Part shown: positions 27,096 to 36,722 of the stretch, in pieces | Position numbering within the stretch: position 1 is the first letter of the stretch | How the letters are laid out: each line of letters opens with the position of its first letter | Made by a program: the position numbers and the translations under genes | Assembly: GCA_025201805.1 (NCBI GenBank) | Contig: MU619393.1 | Span: 3,221 to 67,220, forward strand | DNA length: 64,000 bases | Source of the DNA: Parasitella parasitica NRRL 2501 | Taxonomy: Eukaryota > Fungi > Mucoromycota | Reading direction: 5' to 3' | The notes under the pieces: model-generated | Databases searched by the model: none | Told to the model about the DNA's origin: nothing | What the model saw: only the letters and a program-made list of their open reading frames with translations

Positions 27096-30000
27096 TTAAA
27101 ATTCGGCATTTGGAGGATAAGCTTCTTTCACTGTTGCCCCTTCTTCTGTGCTCAAAACCAGAATACTTAGCTTATCAACCTTTTCCATCATGACATTTTT
27201 AAGGGTGTCATTCGATCCCAGGAGTTCATTTCCTTCAGTTACACCAATATAATCAAAGACACCATTGAGGCCAGTATAACCATCTTTCCAAAAGTGGACC
27301 GCACCTCCCTTAAGACGAGCGTATACCTTGATATACGCGCCTGCTAATGGACGCTTGGACTTTTCGCTCATGACTCGAACGACTCCAAACGATTCTGCAA
27401 GATGAGTGTAAAGACGATTGGCATAATAGGCTTGGCGTCTTTTGATGGGACCACTAGACATCTCGACAAACACATTCTTGTTGCCTCCATTGAAAGGAAC
27501 CTTGACAGTCTGCAATGTGTTTACTTGGCCAACACCGATGACATCAAAATCTTCGTTTTGCTCATCGGCAAAGGACTGTTGGTCTGGTAGTTCCATAGTG
27601 ACAGCATAGCTTGGTTTTATCCAATTGAAGTTTTGGCTGGTCGCTTTTTCGCCATTGCTGTTCATGAAGGGATTGTTGGAGAACATGACCTCGATATTCA
27701 TGTCGTAATACTTTATCTGGATAGAACTGACATTTGCATACTGCACAACCAGTTCATCATTACGTTGATCCACCTCGAACTCAAGGATGGGCTCAGACAA
27801 GATACGGTTGCTTTGCAAAGAATTGTCCGACATCCCAAAAGAGCCTTGCTCGACTTCGCATACAAAGTCATGCAGATTTCTGAACAATTGACGCCATTTA
27901 GGACTATCAAACTCCTTGTATTTGTTTGCAATATCTTTGATAGATTGGAGATCTAATTGCTGCATCTGAGCCTGGTCGGTAGCGACAGGAATGCGTGTTT
28001 TTAAATACGCGTTCAAATAGTCGAATTGTACCTGATGGGTGGGACTCTCAGTGTCTTGAATACGTGCAAATGTAGCTTGTGCTTCACCAATACGGTCTTG
28101 TAAAAGCAAATATAGCGTCAAGATAATGAGATCAGAGTCGGATGGAGCTTTTGATTTGAGACTCAAATAATCAAGGAAATTGTTATATTGCTGATAAAAC
28201 TGTTGATTAAGAATCTCTGCGGTAGGCTTCAAAGGATGTGCTCTAGCATTGAGCAGTGGATAATAGTCAAGAACTAGCAGCTGATGCTGCTCCAACTTGT
28301 CACTGGCAACCAGAGGCGAGTCAAATACTTGGCCGACTTGAGAAAACAAATCGTTGCTTTGGAAGAGGAGCAAATCTCGAATGATGTCGGGAAATTGGTG
28401 GGAAACGCCGTATTTCCAGATTTCCCGAGCCAAGAAATATCTACTCTTCAGGACATCAAAGACGGACCGAGCAAAATCGCGGCTGTTCATCCTCCAATAA
28501 ATCAGACTGAAGTCAAGTTTATCCAATTTGCGATATGAACTGAGGAATCCAATCACTTGTTCATTTGAGCCGCTGTTTGCAATGGCAGACCAAGATTGAG
28601 AGATAGATGCGACCTGATTGGAGCCATTGGATACGGCGGTAGATGATGGCTCATTGACACGAATGTTTGTAGCCTCGATCATACCAATAAGTTCGTCGCC
28701 TGAAGATGTCGATACAGTAACAGGCACAATAGCGTAATCACCGGCGGCAGGAAAGTAGAAAGTACCAACAACTTGGTGCCATGTTGAATAAGGCTGGATG
28801 CGGATTGTGCTTGATTTACAGTAGGTTGTCGTTTGTGTAGGTACCGATCCGGTCGGTATCTGCACAGTTATCTGACAGGTAAGTGGCTTTGATGAGACGT
28901 TGCTAATAATCAAATGAGAGCCATATTCTACCGCAGATTCCAAGGCCTGGGTCGCAGGGTTTATCTTTATGCATTCCTCAGAATCAATATATGCCGCTGG
29001 GTCAAAGACAAAGATCTCCTGGCCCAGCATCAGATTGTGTCGGTCATTGCTAATGAAATTTCCTTGGTTCTCGATCAACGTACGATAAAACACCATTAAA
29101 GGCTGTGTCGCTGCAGAAATAACTAAGCTGGATTGAGAGTCATTGTCGCTGGCTGCGTCAATTTTCCAGTCAGTGTTGGAGGCAAAAGGCAAATCCATCA
29201 AAGCCAATACGTAAAACAGCTCGGCTGGACTATCCAAGCAGTAGATAAAATTCTCTGACAAGAAGTGGCTGTCAGAGGATTGGCAATTGATGTGATGCTC
29301 AACGTAGTCTATCCAAAATTGCTTCAAAGGAGCTTGATTTTGGTAGAAGAATCCCATTTCAGTCCATTCGCTGGTAGATTCGGTATACTTGTAGCTCACT
29401 TTCTTGCGTTGCTCCTTGGCCTTTTCTCTCAATTCGTTGACAGCTTCCTCAACAATCACCTCATCTTGTTCATCATCTTCGTCATCATCTTCATCAGTAT
29501 CAACGGGTGACCCTGGGCTATAACTAGGGGAGGCAAAGCGGCGGAAGGGTTGCCTCAGGGAAGCAGTCTGAGCTATCCTAGGTTCTCCACGAGAAATAAG
29601 ACTAGCGGCAAAAGCAGCAGGAGGAGGAGGAGGAGCAGAAGCTCCAAAAGTTACAGCATTTGATTCACTTGACTGGATGTAACTTTCTGCAACATCGGCA
29701 ACAGTAGTAGTAGCAGCAGCAGCAGCAGCAGCAGCACTGCGCGCTAAAATAGAGTCAAAAATGGAGTCGCTTCTGTTGTCTAATTTTTCATCGTCTAGAG
29801 AATCTTTGAAGCATCTTGCAACAGCCTGCATGACATCCTTGGATTGTGTGGACGCAAAAAGAGCCTTTTCAACCGTATCAAGTTGTTTGAACCGATACAG
29901 ATCACGCTGGTACAGTGATAAATCTTGATCCAAAAGGTACAAATCCATAAAAGACTTTTGAATCTTGCTCTGGATTGCAGGCTTGACATGAACATCAAAA

Positions 30001-33000
30001 AAGACCTCATCTTTCTTCTTTAACCACAAGTTCAATTCATGACAAACATGCTTGTCATGAAGCTCCCGCTTACTGGCCAAATCAAGCCCTGACCATGTCT
30101 TTAAAAAGTAAAACGTTTGAGCAAATTCCTCTCCTGCGGTGGAGATTGTCTTGACAGTGTCAAACAACTTCTCCAAGCTATCTATAGTCTCGTACTCATG
30201 GGTGTTAAGAGCTAAAGAATCATTGGGAAGCAGCTTGGAGATCACCTTTGAGCGAATCAATGCCTTGTTGCTGCTTTTATGTTGACTAAGGTCTTTGAGT
30301 TTCAAGCTTCTGCTGTGGTCAATGACTGTTTGTTGGCAAACAGTTTGATCGCCAGAGACCACAACTGCTTGCAGGAATTTTCCACCATAGCCAAGAGATC
30401 GGCGACTGATTTCAACCTTACCATTTTCAGGTACGGGGAGCACAAGAATGGGCGACAGATGGTCCAAGAATGCAAAGCTGGAATCCATTGCACAGCTAAT
30501 ATTAGATGTGAGCATACTGCAATTGGCACCTCGAGCAAAATCCAGGCCACTGAAGCCCATTGTCTTCATCTTCTTGCTGCAAGCCATCTCCGCCATTTCC
30601 TCTACATTTTCAAGATTTCTTGCGTTGGATGCCGTGCTAGCATTTTTCTTTATATGCATATATATATAAAAAAAAAAAAAAGAGGGGAGGGGGAGTGAGA
30701 CGAGTGAGTAATGACGAAAATTTTATGCGACGAGGATGAATTTTACCTTGGGATACATGAGTAATGATGGTTTCGTCAAGTTACTACCAACCCATTTCTC
30801 AGATCGGGAGCGATTCAAGATGTATTGGTATTCTTCACTAATGCGCTTGTCGCCTAAAAAGATGGAGCGAGTACCGAGTGTATCATTTTCTTGGCAGGGA
30901 GGTTGAGGAAGAGGACGGCTGTTAAAGAGGTGGGTCATGAGAGTTTCGTGGGATGACGGAATAAAGGTGCTGGTGGTCACTACTACAAATGCCTTTGAAG
31001 GAGACGCATTTTCAATTTGAAGTTGGACAGCATCATCAGAGATGGATGTGCTCGAAATAGTCAATGGCTTCTTCAGCACAGATCCATTTTGTCTTCCATA
31101 TCTGTTTTCACCAAGAAGCCAATTAGACCACAATGTTTGGTCGGTGCCATCAACCAAACTTTGAATGACGGTGCATTTGATGTACTCTAAACCGCCAGTC
31201 GAAGAAGGAATGTGAAGCATGTATTCACCCTCGGGTAACCCTGCAACAGTGATGAACCCATCCTGCTTTTGGATTTTATCTGAAGCGTCTCTGACGAGGG
31301 TTCTAAAAAATTAAATGTTAGAGTAAAGTAGCATTTCGAGCCAAGATGCTGTGTGTACTTACGACCGGATACCAGTAGCATAAAGAGAGTAGAGCGAACC
31401 AGGAAGGCTGGTGGGGCAAGCAATCCTGAACTCCTTGCCAGCAGATACACAAACTGCAGGTGGCAGAGCAGAATTAATATCGTTTCGGAACACCCATTGC
31501 TTGTAGGTAGAATAAGTATTGTTAAACTCAATCCATTGGATATCTTTGAGCTCTCCAAGTTCAACGGCACCTTCTTGGTTTGTCTTGACAAGGACATCAA
31601 CGGTACGATTGACAAAGGCATGCTTAAGTCGAAGAGAAACCTCGTAGTCTTTCTGGGGCTCACCGTTCTTTCCAAAAGCACGGATGAAATAGATGTCGTT
31701 TGATTTTTCAAGCTGAACACTGCACGGAAGATTACGGCTGCTTGGTCCAACACAGAACGAAATGTTGTGATTAGCGCCAATTTCATGCATTGAGCCATCG
31801 ATACCCTTGAGCTTTCCCGTAAGATGGAAGTCAACAAATGTCACTATATATTATATAAAATGATCCAAAGTTAAAAAAAAAGAAAAAAAAAAGAAGAAGA
31901 AGAAGCATTCGGGCATCTGCAATATACTTACGTTGCTCAGGCACAATGAAATCAAAACTAATATAGCTAGGGTTGCAATCAATATTTTGACAGGTGGAAC
32001 TAGTTTTGACATTGCTTGAATTGGTGCAATCAACACTCAAGGTTAGTTTTTCTTGTAATAAACTCCAAGGTACAGTAACATCGTTTAGAGTCAATTTGGG
32101 GACAACTACGACTGTCGCCTTCTTGTTTGTGTTGACCATTTCAGGATTCACGTAAAAGCTAGCTTTCAAGTTGTATTGCTCAGCATGATGGTAAAAACTT
32201 GCAGGCTCGCAGAAGCCGTCGTTCGCAGATACAAGAATCACTTTTCTCATTTTGGAACTTTGATCGCGAGGCAAGTAGGGAATCAGGATGTTGTTGGCAT
32301 TGTCAGCCTGTATGTATGTCAGCAATCTATATATCGTTTTTAAAGATCTTGGCTATATATATGTTGCACAAACCTCGTAATACTGATTGTTATACCATAT
32401 CTTCGCATTTTCTAAAATTTGGCCATCTTCACGAACTATCTTGGCTACGTGGCCAGCTGGCGTCTCTTGAATAACATGTCTAAGGTAGCCCTTTTGCACA
32501 ATAACGCGGCATTGGTGCTGGCCACCTACAAATTCAACCACCCAAAGACCACGACCTTTAAACACGTCAGCTGCCAAACCGCTTTGACCAAACTCGAATT
32601 CAGTAGTTTTCACCAACAAAGCTGGCTCGGAAGAGTAGTCCATATCCTTTTCAAACGTAGGGCAGAGGCCATCCAGATTGATATTGCTGTTGGCAGCAAC
32701 AGGATTACTGCCATCGTTCAGATGAATGCGCCAGTAGTTCTCGGTGTCAATCTGGAATACGCGAATGGCAAGGCGAGATATGTTTTTTGTTTTAATCTGC
32801 AATTTGATGGCATCAGATGGCTTTCTTTTCTCACAAGTGTTGATAGTGGCAGGCGTAAATGACACCAATGATTTGGATACCAGAGATTCGTAAGCAGCAC
32901 TACCTAGAGATTTTGCCCAAGATCCTTGGTTTTTAGTATCGGATGATACTGTCAGCATGATCTCGGCTAACATGGGCTTCAAAATATTATGGTAATCCAT

Positions 33001-34319
33001 ATATGCGCCAAGGGCTTCAGTAGAAACAGTTAGTTTTTGGCGTGTAACCAAGCCTGTCAAGTATTCCTCGACTACCAAGCGTTTATCCGAGTCAGGAATG
33101 GCGCATTGACCAAGCAGAGGTAATGAAATCAAAGAGTTTTCCGTGCTGCTGTTTCCAAACGATACTGAGCGAGTGGGAACTGGGGACAACATTTGAGCAT
33201 TGTTGTTGTTGTTGTTATTGGACGAAATGGATAAATAGCTATAAACTAGTTTTAAACTTCCATACAAACATTTGCTAAATACACTTACTTTACTAGACGT
33301 TCCTCACAAAAATCTTGTCTAACAATGTCAATACGCAACTTGTGAAATTTGATTGCTGCGTTCACGGTAAAATACATGCCGGGTAGCTTTTCAGCAAAGG
33401 TCTCCAAGCGATCCAAGTAATCCTTGAGCACATTGGCATCATCGTCCCAAAAAGAAATCGACTGATGGGCATGATATTCAGCCGGTACCAATTTCTCGAG
33501 ATAGGCATTGACAAAAGTGTCGTGCAGGAAAACAACGTTGGGGATTCTGTCAATGAGCTGATCAAGCTGCTGCAAGGTAAAATTGTAGAAAGGTAAGTTT
33601 TCCAGGCACCAGTTAGAATCAGACGTCTGTTCTTTCCACAATGTGGCCAAACGGTTTATTAAATCCGGACCAAATGCACTTTCCGAAGGGATATACAGCA
33701 GCTTTTTCAATAGCGCGACTTGTTCGTTTGGAGACAATCCTTGCCACAGACTGACATCATTAGCAATAAGAGGGAAAGACAGTATCTCTAGATCAAGCAT
33801 AGTATGGCCAGTGGAGGATGCAAACTCTTTGAAGCTGTCGCGGATCAAGTTTTTACCATCGAGCAAAGCAGGATCAAGCTTGCATGGTGCAGTTGATTTG
33901 CTGCAGGATTCAGTCGAAGGAAGACTACTCTGCTCTGGAGTGGCTACCGGCTGTCCGTTATCGATCATGTCAAGGTGAAGGCCTTTCTTGATGAATTCAA
34001 TACTAGTGCTAGTCTCGAATGGGTAGATCAATAAATAAAAGCGCGTGGAGAGCTCCCTGAAGCGCGCGCTGTGGCCATCCAGCTTCGCAAGAAGATCCTT
34101 CATCTGTTTTGAGAGCTCATTTTCGGCATCCGTTGCTTGGCGTACTTTAACAGGATCTTGGTGGTTCATGACTTGGTCGTAAATCTTTTGCAGCAAAATC
34201 AGGCCCTGATAATACGTTGCATCCTCGGTGTTTGCTGCTGCTAATTTGTCGACAACATCCTGTCTATTATCAAGGGGGGCAGTTGCAAAACTCTCTTTCA
34301 ATGAGGAGATAAACGGCAT
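27096..34319 (-). CDS. Giant (~2,300 aa, 6 exons) conserved protein of unknown function; AbpF-like / planctomycete giant-hypothetical family
   Basis: Six consecutive minus-strand ORFs joined by short GT-AG introns. Motifs include INLDGL, GRGLWVVEFVGG, EYQYILNR, CHELN, FWIDY, YYPLLNARAH, YLLLQDRIGEA and YIKVYARLKGGAVHFWKDGYTGLNGVFDY. The family assignment is from recalled motifs, not from a search. Confidence 0.8.
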
Positions 34320-35507: not shown

Positions 35508-36722
35508 ATGAGTGGATGGAAACAAGCACCGCAACAGCAGTGGCAGAGCAATGCTTCTGAATACACATCTGAATACACATCTGATGAAGAATACACTGAT
35601 GACGACGACCTACCGCCTCTTGCTGCCACATGGGGCACCCAAACTGTTGAAAAGGATGGCACTACCAATGTTAGCTTAACTGTCAGCGGTTGGCAAAGTC
35701 TTATTGATCCCAGCATCAAAACCAAACCTGGTGGTATTGGAAGTGGTCAGCTTCATCGTCGTGGAGCTAATTTCAAGCCCATCGATGAGCAAGACATTAT
35801 TGATAGACGTTTAGGTATTCCTGTCCAGGGTGGGTTGGGCGGTGGTAAGAAGAAGAAGAAATCCAAGAAGCCTGCTGCTAATGGCAGTGTCAATCTTCCA
35901 TCTACCCCAAAAAGAAGACCTGTTTCTACTTCTTTGATCCCTCCATCAGGATCTGCGTTTCGTGGAAGAGAAGCAATTACTTCGGGCGCTTGGGGTTCTG
36001 GTTCTCTATCCTCCACCCCTTTCTGGCAGCAGCCAACCAACAACGCAGGGAATGGCTCTGCGGCCAGTAAGTATGCTTCTCTTTCATCTGCCAGCAATGC
36101 AGGAAATGGCGCTGCGACCAGTAAGTATTCTTCTCTTTCATCTGCCAATAGCCGTCCTCCTGCTTTCACTCGCCCACCAAATCCATTCCAATCAACCCAA
36201 CCTTCCCCACTTGTTGCTCCATCTAGACCAGCAGAGCCTGCATCATTCATTAGGTCCAATAAAGGATCTGCTGCTTCAAAGTATGCTTCACCTGCTGCTA
36301 CCATTCCTGTGGCAACACAACAACAATATCAACCTCAGCAACTTCAGCAACCTCAACAACTTCAGCAACCTCAACAACTTCAGCAACCTCAACAACTTCA
36401 GCAGCCTCAGCAGCCTCAGCAGCCTCAACAGCCTCAACAGCCTCCACAACCTATGGTTTTCAATGTACCCACCGCTAGCTTAAAATTAGAACAGCCTATT
36501 ATGAATATCAAGGTAGAAATATCAATTGGTCAGTATGCATCTATGAGTATCTATGCAAATGAAGCACCAGAAAAGGCTGTAGAAAGACTGGAGCGAAGTG
36601 CCAAGCTGACGAATCAGGATTTTGGATTTGATGACTATCAAAGGAGCAATGTCAAAGCATATATTACATCTCTTGTTGACGATTATAACAAAAGAATGGG
36701 TATCACATCTCAAGCCCAATGA
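35508..36722 (+). CDS. Uncharacterised intronless protein, mostly low-complexity (S/G/N/P-rich and QQP repeats), with a small globular C-terminal domain
   Basis: 404-aa ORF with good start context (AAAATG), a CT-rich leader, internal repeats and a K-rich patch. No family recognised. Confidence 0.75.
   Translation: MSGWKQAPQQQWQSNASEYTSEYTSDEEYTDDDDLPPLAATWGTQTVEKDGTTNVSLTVSGWQSLIDPSIKTKPGGIGSGQLHRRGANFKPIDEQDIIDRRLGIPVQGGLGGGKKKKKSKKPAANGSVNLPSTPKRRPVSTSLIPPSGSAFRGREAITSGAWGSGSLSSTPFWQQPTNNAGNGSAASKYASLSSASNAGNGAATSKYSSLSSANSRPPAFTRPPNPFQSTQPSPLVAPSRPAEPASFIRSNKGSAASKYASPAATIPVATQQQYQPQQLQQPQQLQQPQQLQQPQQLQQPQQPQQPQQPQQPPQPMVFNVPTASLKLEQPIMNIKVEISIGQYASMSIYANEAPEKAVERLERSAKLTNQDFGFDDYQRSNVKAYITSLVDDYNKRMGITSQAQ
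36330..36452 (+). repeat. Coding minisatellite (CAGCAACCTCAACAACTT)n encoding QQPQQL/QQP
   Basis: 18-nt unit repeated about 4 times, followed by 9-nt CAGCAGCCT/CAACAGCCT units. Confidence 0.9.

Follow-up and report, generated by a model that had tools for sequence, protein, structure and literature searches.

A six-exon gene of Parasitella parasitica that very probably belongs to the CAGE family of megadalton shell proteins

The gene at 34319 to 27096 on the minus strand of a 64,000-nucleotide stretch of the Parasitella parasitica NRRL 2501 genome (contig MU619393.1; hereafter the window) is very probably the single orthologue in this fungus of the CAGE family, to which Dictyostelium AbpF and Tetrahymena CAGE1-3 belong. 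It has six exons and five introns and encodes a 2,286-residue protein. The family, its distribution including Mucorales, its architecture and its resemblance to macroglobulin have already been published, and the finding is thus already known. New relative to the CAGE paper are the shared introns, the lack of a signal-like stretch in the fungal proteins, a disordered insert at a fixed site and the absence of a conserved operon partner in bacteria.

McCafferty et al. describe the family in 'The CAGE complex' (bioRxiv 10.1101/2025.09.22.677704; 2025-09-22, v2 2026-04-03). They report that Tetrahymena CAGE1 (I7MLD7) and Dictyostelium AbpF are homotetrameric hollow shells of ~1 MDa, measuring ~22 x 16 x 12 nm, with structures at 6.9 and 3.6 Å (PDB 11KS, 11KT). 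The chain has 15 domains and no Pfam or SCOP match. Its beta sandwiches are Ig-like, and two of them have alpha-2-macroglobulin (A2M) as top match; its helical domains have no match in the PDB, and the overall architecture is reported to be novel. About 3,500 homologues were found, two thirds of them bacterial and especially from the Planctomycetes-Verrucomicrobia-Chlamydiae (PVC) phyla, whereas animals and flowering plants yielded none. Signal peptides occur in most bacterial members but not in the eukaryotic ones. The same paper ties AbpF and the ciliate and planctomycete proteins to Mucor and mucoralean fungi, which it names as carriers, and adds Mortierella, chytrids, choanoflagellates and amoebozoans. 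A reading of the window made from the sequence alone had placed the protein in a family known from Planctomycetes and some other bacteria, ciliates and AbpF but not from animals, and both statements agree with these reports. Its description of the protein as uncharacterised no longer holds for the architecture, solved since 2025, and still holds for the function.

We compared the exons of the window one by one and made full-length comparisons with the public record P0162 ('hypothetical protein BD408DRAFT_486588 [Parasitella parasitica]', 2,286 aa). All six exon translations are exact contiguous substrings of P0162; therefore, the exon model of the window is the public model. P0162 matches P0165, which is the Rhizopus protein ORE06466.1, over its full length (42% identity, E=0). 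In the available portion of Table S2 of the CAGE paper, ORE06466.1 (Rhizopus microsporus BCV72DRAFT_305474) is a BLASTP match of AbpF (XP_635154.1; E 7e-99, 24% identity; bioRxiv 10.1101/2025.09.22.677704). Because P0162 matches a protein that is itself an AbpF match in this part of the table, the protein of the window is linked to AbpF. From the Rhizopus value given there, ~24% identity to AbpF would be expected for the Parasitella protein.

Other properties of the protein are those of the family. A single polypeptide of 2,286 aa falls within the class range of ~1,900-2,400 aa and between the lengths (1,890-2,418 aa) of AbpF (DDB_G0291229) and CAGE1, CAGE2 and CAGE3 (I7MLD7, I7M9Z0, I7MGF4). 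Pfam gave no match above the cut-off on any of the six exons, as published for CAGE1. The taxon range (PVC bacteria, Mucorales and others) is the same, and the eukaryotic members likewise have no signal peptide.

The predicted order of domains in the C-terminal half also follows the published one. We modelled exon 6 with AlphaFold2 (AF2) from a 23-sequence alignment, which gave a mean predicted local distance difference test score (pLDDT) of 65.7 and a predicted template modelling score (pTM) of 0.44. In protein numbering, the model runs from beta strands (1194-1258) through a helical bundle (1261-1424), a disordered stretch (1412-1539) and further helices (1546-1586) to a beta domain (1598-1768), two helical domains (1789-1874 and 1918-2054) and a C-terminal beta domain (2057-2279). 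In this moderate-confidence model the order mirrors CAGE1 domains 10-15 (beta 10, split helical 11, beta 12, helical 13 and 14, beta 15), with nearly all boundaries within ~40 residues.

CAGE1 domain 11 consists of residues 1244-1414 and 1519-1559 with a gap between them (bioRxiv 10.1101/2025.09.22.677704). The disordered insert of the Parasitella protein corresponds to this gap between residues 1414 and 1519. It is encoded at 29340-29723 (minus strand; residues ~1412-1539), lies inside a helical domain, is predicted to be disordered (pLDDT <50) and contains the poly-A, poly-P and acidic runs that the sequence-only reading had called a central low-complexity hinge. The insert occupies the same alignment position in 93 of 93 family rows, and its sequence is unconserved. 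Bacterial inserts measure 85-168 aa and fungal ones 95-179 aa, apart from a single fungal protein whose insert has 425 aa. Judged by its alignment position, the insert is a conserved family feature and not a lineage-specific quirk.

The motif series named in the sequence-only reading is complete in the protein: INLDGL, RGLWVVEF, EYQYILNR, CHELN, FWIDY, NARAH, YLLLQDRIGEA and IKVYAR...WKDGYT...FDY. In an alignment of 43 family proteins, the columns of all these motifs are conserved or invariant. In the last of them, the C-terminal signature at 27249-27335 (minus strand), the residues K, D, G, Y, T, G, F and Y show no variation in alignments A1 and A2.

We folded exon 4 with 68 bacterial sub-range references (AF2 mean pLDDT 83.5). 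The model contains a complete beta sandwich at 31482-31733 (minus strand; residues ~795-878), and we searched for its fold with VIA-align among 48,161 PDB chains. The best match was TEP1r (Z 9.4, rmsd 2.3 Å over 78 residues), followed by invasin (Z 8.2) and the macroglobulin (MG) domain MG1 of E. coli A2M (Z 8.2). C3, human A2M, C5 MG4, C4, CD109 and Salmonella A2M gave Z 7.3-7.8, and MG domains occupy most of the top ranks (Z 7.3-9.4). Foldseek agreed weakly, with E. coli A2M as the top two matches of the module (E 4e-3 to 8e-3). For the whole exon-6 model it returned weak multi-beta-sandwich matches headed by C3/C3b and E. coli A2M. The fold result covers the exon-4 module, the one folded; the remaining beta modules run across exon junctions. 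The model of the exon-4 module fits the central array of MG/Ig-like sandwiches in CAGE domains 3-8. The sequence-only reading had suspected MG-like beta modules, called for a fold search against MG domains and proposed a large cage. The module's matches and the two CAGE sandwiches with A2M as top match match the first suggestion, and the published structures of two other members agree with the last.

To place the protein among its relatives, we searched 1.84 billion cluster representatives with phmmer, using exon 6 (1,183 aa) as query. The search returned 2,301 matches with E<=1e-3, of which 837 had E<=1e-30. Most were 2,060-2,340 aa long, and exon 6 aligned to their C-terminal half. E was 0 for orthologues and about 1e-105 for bacterial relatives, and therefore the family relation is not due to chance. 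The top matches came from Mucorales (Helicostylum, Mycotypha, Blakeslea, Pilobolus, Apophysomyces, Radiomyces, Cunninghamella, Hesseltinella, Mucor, Thamnidium, Rhizopus, Phycomyces and Absidia), followed by Endogonales (Endogone and Jimgerdemannia). Orthologues across the two orders show 37-100% identity, and all Mucoromycotina checked by name carry a relative. Nearly all fungal records are named 'hypothetical protein'; one Choanephora orthologue is named 'Actin-binding protein F'. Below the fungi stood ~2,100-aa proteins with 30-33% identity, and those looked up were bacterial or metagenomic. Further homologue searches with the C-terminal half of P0001, with profile A1 and with the C-terminal 117 aa of P0162 gave Mucoromycotina and bacterial or metagenomic proteins only. 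Two long metagenomic matches, P0107 and P0139, were considered as possible eukaryotic members and are bacterial judging by their neighbour genes. Sequence searches of the PDB with exon 6 and with the 43-sequence family profile gave no match in a copy that did not hold the CAGE entries 11KS and 11KT.

We then scanned bacteria and archaea, one genome per species, with a back-translated pattern of the C-terminal signature. The signature occurs in at least 600 stretches of bacterial species genomes, at least 586 of which were confirmed as relatives. The best 80 bacterial loci are mostly from Planctomycetota and Verrucomicrobiota and include Kiritimatiellota, Lentisphaerota, Desulfobacterota, Rifleibacteriota/Ozemobacter, Hydrogenedentota, Myxococcota and Candidatus Uabimicrobium amorphum. 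The bacterial homologues (~2,100 aa) are collinear with the Parasitella protein along the whole length at 25-33% identity, and share its invariant residues, its C-terminal KDGYT signature and the site of its disordered insert. They differ from it in an N-terminal signal-peptide-like hydrophobic stretch (56/68), in having no introns and, in some cases, in tandem duplication.

The gene neighbourhoods of these 80 loci, which the sequence-only reading had proposed to inspect, have no partner in common. Even the most frequent neighbour families are found at no more than 8-9 of the 80; these are PSCyt1/PSCyt2/PSD1 proteins, DUF1501 and a mixed group with Ser/Thr kinase and PP2C phosphatase. At least the PSCyt/PSD1 and DUF1501 groups are very abundant planctomycete paralogue families. 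We read the bacterial CAGE genes in these 80 loci as having no conserved operon partner.

The N-termini of fungal and bacterial members differ. With a crude hydropathy test for an N-terminal hydrophobic window, applied to 17 fungal and 68 bacterial proteins, we found such a stretch in none of the fungal proteins versus 56 of the bacterial ones. No hydrophobic N-terminal stretch was found by hydropathy in the Parasitella protein, where the maximal 10-aa hydropathy in the first 35 residues is 0.6. In bacteria the stretch precedes a conserved mature N-terminus with the consensus EIGF.E.FALA.DR...LIPGTEDYYYYH, and the fungal Met1 is the start of this conserved mature block. Because 56 of 68 carry the signal-peptide-like stretch, the bacterial CAGE proteins are probably exported. 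The fungal N-termini are consistent with a cytosolic location. These counts agree with the signal-peptide result of the CAGE paper (bioRxiv 10.1101/2025.09.22.677704).

By extension from the two solved homologues, we infer that the fungal CAGE is a cytosolic homotetrameric hollow shell. Four copies would form an ellipsoidal shell of ~1 MDa and ~22 x 16 x 12 nm with slit-like openings; it would lie in the cytosol, and most of its bacterial relatives would be exported. Our best guess, which is speculation, is that the shell may passively contain or trap client proteins, enclosing or shielding them as A2M or a chaperone-like holdase does. The disordered insert at its fixed position would be a candidate gate or bait, again speculatively. 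A more specific version, in which the insert is a functional bait or gate and CAGE is a thioester-free analogue of A2M that captures proteases or other clients in its cavity (cytosolic in fungi, periplasmic or extracellular in PVC bacteria), strikes us as improbable.

Several points weigh against the assignment and the function proposed here. Membership is linked to AbpF transitively, through the available part of Table S2, and by matching family features, rather than by direct alignment to AbpF or structural superposition. The exon-6 model is only of moderate confidence (mean pLDDT 65.7, pTM 0.44), and the solved structures are those of CAGE1 and AbpF, whereas fungal members are known from sequence and predicted models. 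The 43-protein alignment shows no conserved catalytic motif and the 80 bacterial loci no operon partner, which leaves no mechanistic clue; an enzymatic role has no support from a catalytic motif, a cofactor site or an operon partner. No substrate density was seen in the CAGE cavity (bioRxiv 10.1101/2025.09.22.677704).

The resemblance to A2M raises the question of whether the protein belongs to that family. Like A2M, complement C3-C5 and insect TEP1, it is a large multi-domain protein built partly of MG-type beta sandwiches, and its exon-4 module superposes on their MG domains (Z 7.3-9.4). A2M is likewise a homotetrameric cage and has a flexible bait region. Most of the best structural matches of the module are MG domains of TEP1r, A2M, C3, C4, C5 and CD109, C3/C3b and E. 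coli A2M lead the Foldseek list for exon 6, and ESM Atlas features put A2M/MG2 clusters at 0.77-0.81. However, a Z of 7-9 is within the range that a common beta-sandwich arrangement can give, and ESM Atlas scores below 0.9 are leads only, under the level of evidence. No exon of the window matches the Pfam families for MG, A2M, bait-region or thioester domains, and of 69 family copies of the module, 3 give sub-threshold matches to bMG3, MG4 or MG2 (E 0.003-0.07). The CGEQ-type thioester motif is absent in P0162 and not conserved in the family, a similar motif being present in 2 of 93 family rows in the N-terminal part (~residues 357-379). Moreover, the large helical domains of CAGE have no counterpart in these proteins and no match in the PDB, and its overall architecture is reported to be novel (bioRxiv 10.1101/2025.09.22.677704). 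We conclude that the resemblance, a fold-level match of a predicted MG-type sandwich (TEP1r Z 9.4, E. coli A2M MG1 Z 8.2), is one of fold and general design and not of family membership. That the protein is a true, very divergent A2M/complement/TEP member working as a thioester protease trap is highly improbable. The name AbpF suggests yet another role, chiefly actin-binding or cytoskeletal, which we consider very unlikely. AbpF owes its name to an interaction with actin reported for the Dictyostelium protein, and one CAGE-actin cross-link was found in Tetrahymena (bioRxiv 10.1101/2025.09.22.677704). AbpF was, however, one of many proteins in an unrelated pull-down list. No known actin-binding domain was found by Pfam on any exon, hundreds of bacterial homologues are probably exported in organisms without actin, and the solved architecture is a closed cage rather than a cross-linker.

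Very few megadalton protein shells common to bacteria and eukaryotes have been found in recent years; CAGE is one of them. The window adds a clean, single-copy, exactly modelled mucoralean gene, close to genetically tractable Mucor species, and no new kind of object. Three family-wide facts constrain hypotheses: the old, intron-rich residence of the gene in fungi (before the Endogonales-Mucorales split), the fungal N-termini without a signal-like stretch and the conserved insert. Annotation could be updated, as public records still say 'hypothetical' and one bacterial member is labelled NusB.

The gene is one intact, vertically inherited, intron-bearing fungal gene. Its exons sum to 6,861 nt, equal to 2,286 codons plus the stop, in an unbroken reading frame. 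On the minus strand, exon 1 (33289-34319) encodes residues 1-343 and 2 nt of codon 344, a predicted helical N-terminal region with no signal peptide. Exon 2 (32374-33238; residues 345-632) covers the end of the helical region and the first beta-rich stretch, with INLDGL and RGLWVVEF on conserved columns of A1. Exons 3 (31932-32307; residues 633-757) and 4 (31363-31843; residues 759-917) match P0162 exactly, and exon 5 (30747-31302; residues 919-1103) has EYQYILNR on conserved A1 columns. Exon 6 (27096-30647; residues 1104-2286 and the stop; 3.55 kb) encodes the domains predicted above. The three residues of P0162 missing between the exon substrings are split codons. Walking the public protein along the DNA (protein-to-genome mapping) also supported the exon model with its predicted splice junctions. 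Full-length Mucorales orthologues (2,217-2,336 aa) are collinear across all six exons, from 34319 to about 27100, and residue 1 of all of them aligns to the ATG at 34319. Because of this collinearity, the locus holds one gene and not several.

The sequence-only reading had described an intact six-exon gene for a ~2,300-aa protein with its own TATA box and no signal peptide. The exons, the length and the absence of a hydrophobic N-terminus hold, and the five introns are GT-AG introns of 50-99 nt. The box, TATAAATA at 34378-34371 (minus strand), was read directly in the sequence 59 nt upstream of the ATG; a promoter role for it can only be inferred.

We mapped public protein models to their loci in Parasitella, Rhizopus, Hesseltinella, Phycomyces and Endogone and compared their introns. 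All five Parasitella introns match introns of the three other Mucorales (Rhizopus, Phycomyces and Hesseltinella) in position and phase, and two also match Endogone. On the minus strand, intron 1 (33239-33288; 50 nt, GTAAGT..TTATAG, phase 2), intron 4 (31303-31362; 60 nt, GTAAGT..TTTTAG, phase 2) and intron 5 (30648-30746; 99 nt, GTAAAA..ATAAAG, phase 0) are common to the three Mucorales. Intron 2 (32308-32373; 66 nt, GTTTGT..ATACAG, phase 0), which has a CTGAC branch-point-like site, and intron 3 (31844-31931; 88 nt, GTAAGT..ATATAG, phase 1) are shared with the three Mucorales and Endogone. Eight more positions common to Endogone and Mucorales are absent in Parasitella, and at least 10 positions are common to Endogone and Mucorales. 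Because positions are shared across both orders, the gene was intron-rich in their common ancestor within Mucoromycotina. Parasitella now has 5 introns, Rhizopus 8, Hesseltinella 13, Phycomyces 16 and the partial Endogone gene at least 14. By this comparison, the intron losses in Parasitella came later and lie mostly toward the 3' side. Its last exon, 27096-30647 (minus strand), is intron-free over 3.55 kb and has lost at least eight Endogone-Mucorales positions, a clear 3'-biased loss; having lost all introns in its 3' half sets the Parasitella copy apart from AbpF and CAGE1-3.

The origin of the gene can be weighed against these introns and against a tree. It is improbable to the point of being negligible that the gene is a contaminant of the assembly or a recent insertion from bacteria, or that it is really several genes, separate or decayed. 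Its numerous bacterial relatives and the lack of any Pfam annotation would fit such an origin, but the five spliceosomal introns at positions kept in other Mucorales, the fungal housekeeping genes on the flanks, a GC content of 39-46% that resembles the coding DNA around it, the unbroken frame and the collinear full-length orthologues rule out contamination, recent transfer and separate genes. A single ancient transfer from a PVC-type bacterium to an early Mucoromycota ancestor, with later loss of the signal peptide and gain of introns, rather than vertical descent from the last eukaryotic common ancestor (LECA), is unlikely but deserves more weight. Outside Mucoromycotina, exon 6 scores best against bacterial proteins (30-33% identity, E about 1e-105), and the further entries of the best 150 that were checked by name or contig are Mucoromycotina or bacterial. 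Among the matches listed in the available part of Table S2, AbpF scores higher against Planctomycetota (~31% identity) than against Rhizopus (24%), and the eukaryotic distribution is patchy. Greater likeness to bacteria can, however, simply reflect slower bacterial evolution, and Mortierella, chytrids, choanoflagellates and amoebozoans also carry the gene. In a FastTree of 93 full-length proteins (25 fungal and 68 bacterial), all fungal members group in one clade with support 100, a long stem and an inner order that tracks fungal taxonomy, and this clade joins the bacterial part at its base and not within a shallow bacterial clade. Any transfer would be older than the Endogonales-Mucorales split, because at least 10 intron positions are shared. 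The tree includes no other eukaryotes and therefore cannot separate descent from LECA from one very old transfer. The sequence-only reading had offered 'ancient' or 'acquired and then intronised'; the intron-rich ancestor in Mucoromycotina narrows this choice but does not settle it.

The gene is single-copy in the 32.8-Mb assembly, and its neighbours are ordinary fungal genes encoding a major facilitator superfamily transporter, the large subunit of ribonucleotide reductase and UDP-glucose pyrophosphorylase. About 1.2 kb upstream, and divergently transcribed, lies a 404-aa open reading frame at 35508-36722 (plus strand) with no Pfam match, where GC reaches 47-49%. Elsewhere in the family, Thamnidium elegans (P0155/P0156) and Apophysomyces (P0015/P0169) have two copies each. 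At least 2 bacterial loci carry tandem full-length CAGE genes on the same strand (L010:9911-22837 and L033:9254-22395), and L019 and L037 probably do as well.

Some public records call for comment. P0193, a 2,127-aa CAGE homologue from a Lentisphaerae metagenome-assembled genome at NCBI, bears the almost certainly mistaken annotation 'transcription antitermination protein NusB'. P0158, a partial protein on an 8.6-kb contig labelled 'Basidiobolus ranarum' at NCBI, is 64% identical to the protein of Helicostylum (Mucoraceae), closer than many true Mucorales pairs, which suggests a mucoralean contaminant in the Basidiobolus assembly or a transfer. Candidatus Uabimicrobium amorphum (L009, chromosome 6837678-6863764) encodes a full-length CAGE homologue with a signal-peptide-like N-terminus; this planctomycete reportedly engulfs prey in a phagocytosis-like manner. 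Finally, P0160 and P0162 come from two assemblies labelled Parasitella parasitica and are 75-80% identical in tblastn segments and 84% identical across aligned columns. Because they diverge this strongly though the genome of the window carries a single copy, the two 'strains' may belong to different species, or one of the labels may be wrong.

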